Below, one piece after another: positions 1-1,504 of a stretch of DNA of 64,000 nucleotides. A program made the translations under genes and the position numbers. Positions within the stretch are counted from its first letter, which is position 1; the number at the start of each line of letters is the position of its first letter. Source of the stretch: Cyanophora paradoxa CCMP329 (Eukaryota > Plantae > Glaucophyta); NCBI GenBank assembly GCA_004431415.1, contig QPMI01000220.1:124001-188000 (forward strand), in the 5' to 3' direction. Below the pieces are notes generated by a model that did no database searches, was not told the DNA's origin, and saw only the letters and a program-made list of their open reading frames with translations.

Positions 1-1504
1 GGAGCCGCTGTACAAGGTGCATGGGACGGGACTGCAGGCGAGGGGCTGCGGCAAGCGCCGGCTGATTGGGGCGGGGGCAGCGGGCGCTGGAGATCCGAGA
101 GGCGGCGCTGGGTCCGACGCACCCGGACATGGCGGCGTCTCTGAACAGCCTTGCGCTGCTGTACAAGGCGCAGGGGAAGTACGACGAGGCGGAGCCGCTG
201 TACAAGGTGCATGGGACGGGACTGCAGGCGAGGGGCTGCGGCAGGCGCCGGCTGATCGGGGAGGGGGCAGCGGGCGCTGGAGATTTCGAAGGCGGCGCTG
301 GGGCCGACGCACCCGGGCACAGCGGCATGCCTGGACCGCCTTGCGGTGCTGTCCCACAGGCAGGGGAAGTATAACAATGCAGAACCGCTGTTCAAGGTGC
401 CGGGGAAGGGGCTGCAGGCGAGGGGCTGCAGCAAGCGACGTGTATGTTTGATCAGGGAGGGGGCAGTGGGCGCTGGAGATTCGAGAGGCGGCGCTCGGAC
501 CGACACACCCGGACACGGGAGCGTCCCTCAACAACCTTGCGGGGCTGTACTTCTCGCAGGGGAAGTACGACGAAGTGGAACCGCTGTTCAAGGTGCAGGG
601 GACGGGGCCGCAGGCGCGTTGATGCGGCAGGGACTTGCTGATCGGGGAGGGGGCAGCGGGCGCTGCATATTTCGGAGGCGGCACTCGGGCCGATGCACCC
701 GGACACAGCGGCATCCCTCAACAACCTTGCATTTCTGTACAAGTCACAGGGGAAGTACGCTGAAGCCGAGCCGCTGTACAAGGTGCATGGAAAGGGCCGC
801 ACGCGAGGGGCTGCGGCAGGCGCTGGCTGATTGGGGCGGGGGCAGAGGGCGCTGGAGGTTTCAGAGGCGGCGTTAGGGCCGATGCACCCGGACACAGGAG
901 CGTCTCTGAACAGCCTTGCGCTGCTGTACAAGGCGCAGGGGAAGTACGACGAGGCGGAGCCCCTGTACAAGGTGCATGGGACGGGGCTGCAGCCTGCAGG
1001 TGAGGCATTGCGGCAGGCGCCGGCTGATCGGGGCGGGGGCAGCGGGCGCTGGAGATTCGAGAGGCGGCGCTGGGACCGACGCACCCGGACACAGCGACGT
1101 CTCTGAACAACCTTGCGGAGCTTTACCGCTTGCGGGGGAAGTACGATGAGGCGGAGACCCTGCTCAAGGTCAGGGTGCAGGGGCTGCTGGCGAAGGCTGC
1201 GGCAGGCGCCGGCTGATAGGGGCGGGGGCAGCGGGCGCTGGAGATTCGAGAGGCGGCGCTGGGGCCGACGCACCCGGACACAGCGGGGTCCCTGTACAAT
1301 TTAGGAACCCGTCTCCTTGAGCGAGGAATGGCGGCGGAAGCGGCTTTGCTGCTCGAGCGGGCGCTGCACGTTTACGAGGCGCTCTTCGGCTCCGGCCACG
1401 AGAGGACTGGCGGCACCGCAGAGTGGCTCGCGCTCGCGTACGACGCCCTCGGGCGCTCAGAGGAGGCAGCGCGGGTCCGCGCCAAGGCCAAGGCGCCGGC
1501 TTAG
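1..1504 (+). CDS. TPR-repeat protein (kinesin-light-chain-like 42-aa TPRs), 3' portion; 5' end lies outside the window
   Basis: Spliced by hand: exons <1-16, 81-206, 271-396, 467-592, 657-782, 846-971, 1043-1168 (each 126 nt, phase 0) and 1232-1504 (TAG at 1502-1504). Each exon gives [42 protein letters not shown]. All introns are GT..CAG with a CTGAT/TTGAT branch site. Confidence 0.92.
17..1357 (+). repeat. Tandem array of ~190-bp exon+intron units (7 introns, 7 TPR exons including the start of the terminal exon)
   Basis: Introns 17-80, 207-270, 397-466, 593-656, 783-845, 972-1042 and 1169-1231 are homologous to each other (GT..GGG..CTGC..GC..CTGAT.GGG..GGGGGCAG). Period is 189-197 bp. Confidence 0.95.

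Follow-up and report, generated by a model that had tools for sequence, protein, structure and literature searches.

The subject of this study is a protein-coding nuclear gene of the glaucophyte Cyanophora paradoxa. Its 3' end, which is intact, occupies positions 1-1504 of the forward strand of the 64,000-nt stretch of DNA analysed here (the window), and the gene begins upstream of the first position of the window. Read directly, the segment is a one-TPR-per-exon array of six internal exons of 126 nt, all in phase 0, followed by a last exon of 273 nt, and each internal exon encodes one 42-residue repeat of the TPR_10/TPR_12 type. The reading that we consider likely is that this kinesin-light-chain-type TPR gene tail was assembled from tandem 190-bp units, was remodelled by germline recombination, and works as the sensor arm of an NLR-like protein.

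Repeat arrays of this general kind have been reported from other eukaryotes. The NB-ARC-TPR genes of Ectocarpus encode one TPR per 126-nt exon and have introns that contain inactivated TPR exons (Zambounis et al. 2012, PMC3341825), and fungal NLRs carry highly internally conserved TPR, ANK or WD repeats, for which repeat-number polymorphism and positive selection have been shown (Dyrka et al. 2014, PMC4986451). The design of one TPR per 126-nt exon has thus already been described in brown algae; what is new in the array presented here is the co-duplication of its introns and the presence of recombination tracts.

Methods

Database searches were run exon by exon, with the 90-residue last exon as the query against the protein collections. 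For domain assignment, each exon was scanned alone against the Pfam models TPR_10 and TPR_12, the gathering cut-offs of which are 27.5 and 30.1, respectively. Variability within the array was compared with that of 1098 clean 42-residue repeats cut from 106 unrelated TPR_10/12 proteins of the representative search; the 16 for which sources were looked up come from bacterial genomes or from metagenome/other run assemblies.

Results and discussion

Exon/intron anatomy and splice signals

The features of the gene segment are summarized in Table 1. All six internal exons are preceded by AG and followed by GT and are open in one frame, as can be read directly from the sequence. The original prediction of six phase-0 exons of 126 nt, each with one TPR, is borne out in that borders and sizes can be read directly and each exon passes the TPR_10/TPR_12 scores. 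A count of helix-A motifs gives a minimum of nine TPRs, one of them upstream, six in the internal exons and two in the last exon. The stop codon lies at most 48 residues beyond the array, which places these superstructure-forming repeats at the C-terminus. Introns interrupt the coding sequence at a constant position within helix B (...EPLYK/RALEI...). As had also been claimed, any exon skip or in-register unequal exchange keeps the reading frame, the exons being symmetric and in phase 0.

Table 1. Features of the TPR gene segment and its 3' flank (window coordinates).
Feature	Position	Strand	Observations
3' end of upstream TPR exon (...EPLYK), cut by window start	1..16	+	Same as last 16 nt of exon 81-206
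Intron, 64 nt, GT...AG	17..80	+	95% identical to intron 207-270; GTGCA 5' end, TGAT branch-like motif, G-rich 3' end
TPR exon 1, 126 nt, phase 0	81..206	+	AG/GT borders; TPR_10 E = 2e-12, TPR_12 E = 1e-11
Intron, 64 nt	207..270	+	Retention gives a frameshift
TPR exon 2, most divergent repeat	271..396	+	AG/GT borders; TPR_12 E = 9e-9
Intron, 70 nt	397..466	+	6-nt insertion relative to other introns
TPR exon 3	467..592	+	AG/GT borders; TPR_10/TPR_12 match
Intron, 64 nt	593..656	+	
TPR exon 4	657..782	+	AG/GT borders; TPR_10/TPR_12 match
Intron, 63 nt	783..845	+	Multiple of 3, yet in-frame stop 16 codons into the intron on read-through
TPR exon 5	846..971	+	3' 72 nt near-identical to exon 1 (exchange tract)
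Intron, 71 nt	972..1042	+	7-nt internal duplication
TPR exon 6	1043..1168	+	TPR_12 E = 7.5e-14
Last intron, 63 nt	1169..1231	+	In-frame stop on read-through
Last exon, 90 codons plus TAG at 1502-1504	1232..1504	+	Canonical TPR, then degenerate terminal TPR-like helix pair; TPR_12 E = 1.7e-12; TPR_4 at residues 63-82
Probable 3' untranslated region	1505..1800	+	AT-richer stretch after the stop (direct reading)

The seven introns (64, 64, 70, 64, 63, 71 and 63 nt) share a common set of signals. Their 5' ends are of the GTGCA type, with GTCAG instead in the last intron, and each of the seven has the motif TGAT, without variation, 14-15 nt upstream of the acceptor, where it fits a YTRAY branch site. 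The 3' 21 nt form the best conserved part of the intron (distance p = 0.12). At the coordinates given in Table 1, all seven introns end G-rich, in sequence of the GGGGCGGGGGCAG type, with no pyrimidine tract; the G-rich acceptor and the invariant TGAT may reflect the splice-signal grammar of a GC-rich genome. Retention of an intron results in a frameshift or an in-frame stop in seven of seven cases. The introns are predicted to be spliced as drawn, and this reading is supported by homology, because the K/RALEI junction yields a helix-B sequence that the last exon and kinesin light chain structures both contain uninterrupted.

A 273-residue open frame on the minus strand (452-1273) crosses the whole array. 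Two further frames, in the sense direction, are long as well. These long antisense and sense frames are an effect of high G+C content and of the repeat, and ORF length is meaningless in this region. Downstream of the probable 3' untranslated region lies a C-rich stretch with a 42-bp tandem repeat at 2033-2162 (3.1 copies, 71% matches).

TPR identity and structural relatives

Scanned alone, each of the seven exons passes the cut-offs of both TPR_10 and TPR_12, with scores of 35-52 bits (E = 1e-8 to 1e-14). The 42-residue periodicity of helix A, helix B and linker is seen both in the 126-nt length of the exons and in the alignment to kinesin light chain structures. Residues 1-80 of the last exon align to TPR structures of kinesin light chains, the best solved relatives being kinesin light chains 1 and 2 (E = 3e-21); the 42-residue TPR-like repeats of Podospora (PDB 4y6c, 4y6w) are also among the solved relatives. 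The TPR model of nephrocystin-3 is matched by each exon (E about 1e-8 to 1e-11), always on the same segment, 124-165.

The TPR domain of kinesin light chains (PDB 5ojf, 7ai4, 3edt and others) is the closest of the solved structures and has the same 42-residue arrangement of helix A, helix B and linker. Kinesin light chains, however, carry six dissimilar repeats after a coiled coil, whereas the C. paradoxa array comprises nine or more repeats that are closely similar and recent in origin and that resemble each other far more than they resemble any kinesin light chain repeat. Identity as a housekeeping kinesin light chain orthologue, which the original prediction had named among the findings that would refute it, does not fit these at least nine mutually similar repeats or introns that can still be aligned with one another. 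Orthology with nephrocystin-3 does not fit either, since every exon falls on one and the same segment of the model and positional orthology is absent.

Origin of the array by duplication and recombination

Tandem Repeats Finder reports a period of 190 with 6.8 copies and 80% matches. A two-unit repeat of 386 bp received a slightly higher score, but such a higher-order organization was rejected on the unit-by-unit identities, which show no alternating pattern. Between units, nucleotide identity is 75-89% for exons and 65-95% for introns. In pairwise comparisons, the intron core shows a mean distance of 0.20, compared with 0.17, 0.17 and 0.27 for the first, second and third codon positions, respectively. 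Given that the introns are about as well conserved as the exons, the duplicated unit is a 190-bp DNA segment of exon plus intron, not an exon imported from elsewhere. The earlier suggestion that introns were duplicated along with exons, and that introns 1 and 2 are near-identical, therefore stands, with 3 of 64 positions differing between the introns at 17-80 and 207-270 and an intron-core p of 0.20.

Only 3 differences separate window positions 1-80 from 191-270, so that the units lying at this edge of the window may be of more recent origin. Synonymous distances between units (dS) of 0.2-0.76 indicate that most units are not very young and that exchanges are rare on an evolutionary scale.

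Evidence of exchange between units comes from the distribution of the differences between them. Exons 1 (81-206) and 5 (846-971) differ at 13 of 54 positions in their 5' part and at 1 of 72 in their 3' part, and they have a run of 31 consecutive shared polymorphic sites that was matched in none of 5000 shuffles. These values uphold the observation that the two non-adjacent exons have a common 3' half, which had been ascribed to shuffling or conversion. Exact shared tracts of 62 nt (135-196 = 900-961), 53 nt (1-53 = 191-243) and 45 nt (1030-1074 = 1219-1263, across an intron/exon border) were also identified. Such sharing is the signature of gene conversion or of unequal crossing-over among the units of the array. 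The copy number of a 190-bp tandem array could be mis-assembled.

Variability of helix A and selection

Amino-acid identity among the six internal repeats averages 74% (range 62-88%), and 19 of their 42 columns are invariant. The most variable columns of the array are 26, 30 and 29, followed by 23, 41 and 35. When pooled, non-synonymous distance is 2.15 times as large in helix A (columns 16-31) as in the remaining columns (bootstrap 95% CI 1.03-4.63). The seven helix strings quoted in the original prediction were reproduced exactly. Its description of a near-invariant scaffold with variation in one helix was correct as to the helix, as the 2.15-fold excess attests, but overstated the constancy of the scaffold, as fewer than half of the columns of the repeat are unchanging.

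Pairwise dN/dS values range from 0.13 to 0.96, none being above 1, and pooling gives a dN/dS of 0.78 in helix A as against 0.35 elsewhere in the repeat. For helix A, pN/pS is 0.76 (CI 0.39-1.31), a value obtained from seven short repeats and therefore of little power, and the ratio of its change to that of the intron core, used as a neutral yardstick, is 1.21 (CI 0.62-2.21; likewise seven short repeats). Polymorphic sites number 16, 15 and 23 at the three codon positions (chi-square p = 0.35, with only six repeats). Purifying selection on the array is weakly indicated.

In the 106 unrelated TPR_10/12 arrays, within-protein variability peaks at columns 26, 29, 19 and 30, and the variability profile of the C. 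paradoxa array is correlated with theirs (Spearman rho 0.62, p = 1e-5). Since the same columns vary in unrelated arrays, the variability of helix A is a generic property of TPRs and not evidence for a special system. In a fungal model based on kinesin light chain 2, the variable TPR sites sit on the concave face (Dyrka et al. 2014, PMC4986451).

Database relatives and the surrounding window

A word search of public proteins with the last exon returned only four weak matches, with at most 55% identity. An exhaustive comparison of the same exon with a representative library of 1.84 billion proteins gave 58,629 matches, the best 150 of which are all long TPR arrays with at most 58% identity over the matched stretches. 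Among the 16 of these best 150 for which sources were looked up, all come from bacterial genomes or metagenome/other run assemblies, and none is from the locus of the array. Exact look-up of two ATG-started ORFs just downstream of the array found no public record.

Nine of the closest arrays were scanned for further domains. Six of them carry NLR-like domains (an NPHP3_N P-loop in one, NB-ARC in three, TIR in one, and EAD7 with DUF7779 in one); two of the other three have CHAT at the C-terminus, and the last has TPRs only. No room is left for a C-terminal CHAT domain in the C. paradoxa protein, because the TPR array extends to its C-terminus; its layout is compatible with that of STAND-TPR proteins. 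The most similar arrays are those of bacterial STAND/NLR-related TPR_10/TPR_12 proteins (NB-ARC-TPR, NPHP3_N-TPR, TIR-TPR and EAD7-TPR), at no more than 58% identity and with the same variable columns; unlike the C. paradoxa gene, they are prokaryotic and intron-less.

No further TPR units were detected by tblastn and blastn on either strand of the other 62 kb of the window, nor do the introns, which at 63-71 nt hold only splice signals, contain spare or silent TPR exons. The N-terminal modules of the six related arrays and the CHAT module of a seventh had no match in the window by tblastn. Elsewhere in the window, a 577-residue open frame on the minus strand (10065-11801) matches a HYDIN/CFA65/VesB-like Ig domain (E = 1.3e-10). 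This frame probably represents one exon of a gene for a flagellar protein, in keeping with a flagellate host.

Comparison with brown algal and fungal repeat proteins

No published description of NB-ARC, TPR or NLR-like genes of one-TPR-per-exon design was found for Cyanophora or any other glaucophyte. The C. paradoxa array has much in common with the NB-ARC-TPR genes of Ectocarpus, including 42-residue TPRs of the kinesin-light-chain type, symmetric in-frame exons of 126 nt, the C-terminal position of the array, local duplications within it, and a faster-changing TPR surface. The two differ in their introns, which in C. paradoxa are 63-71 nt long, lack inactivated TPR exons and are mutually homologous. 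They differ further in that NB-ARC has been shown in Ectocarpus, whereas the C. paradoxa gene is known from its 3' end alone, and in that its lineage is glaucophyte. Genes of the Ectocarpus type are further characterized by diversifying selection (omega above 1) on some TPR exon lineages or sites; in the C. paradoxa array, where seven repeats give little power, pairwise dN/dS is at most 0.96.

With fungal NLRs, the array shares tandem repeats that are kept similar via inter-repeat recombination. It falls below the level of internal conservation applied to fungal NLRs (at least 85% amino-acid identity over at least 100 residues), given its mean of 74% and range of 62-88%, and fungal NLR repeats, unlike those of C. 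paradoxa, are not split one per exon.

Proposed history and function of the array

Taking anatomy, repeat identity and unit-by-unit divergence together, the segment codes for the C-terminal part of a TPR solenoid of the kinesin-light-chain type, which has at least nine repeats of 42 residues. The array grew as a 190-bp DNA unit, consisting of an exon and an intron of roughly 64 nt, was duplicated in tandem. Recombination between units, either as gene conversion or as unequal crossing-over, later reshaped it, and we propose that this was recombination of the ordinary germline kind. Point divergence arose mainly at those helix-A positions that are variable in TPR arrays generally and that lie on the concave ligand-binding face in published models of related TPRs, these positions being presumably relaxed, with scaffold and splice signals kept under constraint.

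As to function, the array would most likely serve an NLR-like STAND NTPase as its sensor arm at the C-terminus, an open solenoid that would bind a ligand in its groove and hold the upstream switch domain in check. Proteins of this type combine a central P-loop NOD domain (NB-ARC, NACHT or NPHP3_N) with a repeat sensor at the C-terminus. An NLR-like STAND N-terminus is probably encoded upstream of the array; the assignment is made by analogy with the closest arrays, since the window does not reach the upstream part of the gene and the public proteins and contigs searched include none of this locus.

The continuous 190-bp homology might also permit in-frame unequal exchange or conversion that generates polymorphism among strains in copy number and in groove residues, and exchange could perhaps take place between paralogous NLR-like genes as well. 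We regard such strain polymorphism as rather unlikely.

Alternative explanations

The original prediction had proposed a diversifiable, immune-like recognition system, a step that our results do not bear out, although the structural premises behind it hold. Programmed combinatorial diversification, a hypothesis also put forward for Ectocarpus, in which regulated exon skipping or somatic recombination or rearrangement would produce many receptor variants from one gene, could draw on several features of the array: all internal exons are of 126 nt and phase 0, so that every skip or in-register exchange is in frame, the homologous introns make the 190-bp periodic homology continuous, exchange tracts are present, and helix A evolves more quickly than the remainder of each repeat. 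However, dN/dS exceeds 1 in no test (it is at most 0.96), the variable sites are the generic ones of TPRs, and silent or inverted donor cassettes are absent from the introns and from the 62 kb downstream. Furthermore, the units have diverged to dS values of 0.2-0.76, and exchanges must hence be evolutionarily rare. We consider programmed diversification of this kind highly improbable.

A TPR scaffold unrelated to NLRs, such as a kinesin-light-chain-like or nephrocystin-3-like cytoskeletal or ciliary adaptor with a recently expanded repeat tail, would be in keeping with kinesin light chains 1 and 2 as the best solved relatives (E = 3e-21), with the match of each exon to the nephrocystin-3 TPR model, and with an organism that appears to be flagellate (the HYDIN-like gene at 10065-11801). 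This explanation is nevertheless unlikely, given that at least nine repeats are visible as opposed to six in kinesin light chains, that the exons all fall on nephrocystin-3 model segment 124-165 and not on successive ones, and that repeats of 62-88% identity with alignable introns indicate a recent lineage-specific expansion, which would be unexpected for a housekeeping orthologue. We consider it decidedly unlikely that the locus has no present function, whether as a gene copy that is silent or in decay or as a tandem array that was in part mis-assembled. While the public protein collections searched contain no protein or transcript fragment of the locus, and the asymmetry among codon positions is non-significant, all seven visible exons are open, 14 of 14 splice borders are canonical, TGAT is invariant in every intron, and dN/dS of the scaffold is 0.35; the units are also 11-25% divergent, which is enough for unambiguous assembly.

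Conclusions

On its own, the array does not change what is known of TPR receptors. Its still-alignable introns, however, make duplication and conversion events datable and traceable unit by unit, unlike in older arrays. If strain polymorphism were to exist as outlined above, the array would be a glaucophyte counterpart of the concerted evolution of fungal NLRs, achieved via exon-intron cassettes. If the upstream part of the gene is a STAND switch, C. paradoxa would possess an unusually young glaucophyte NLR-like gene built one TPR per exon, and, together with the genes of brown algae and fungi, this would point to a repeated origin of recombination-prone repeat sensors among eukaryotes.
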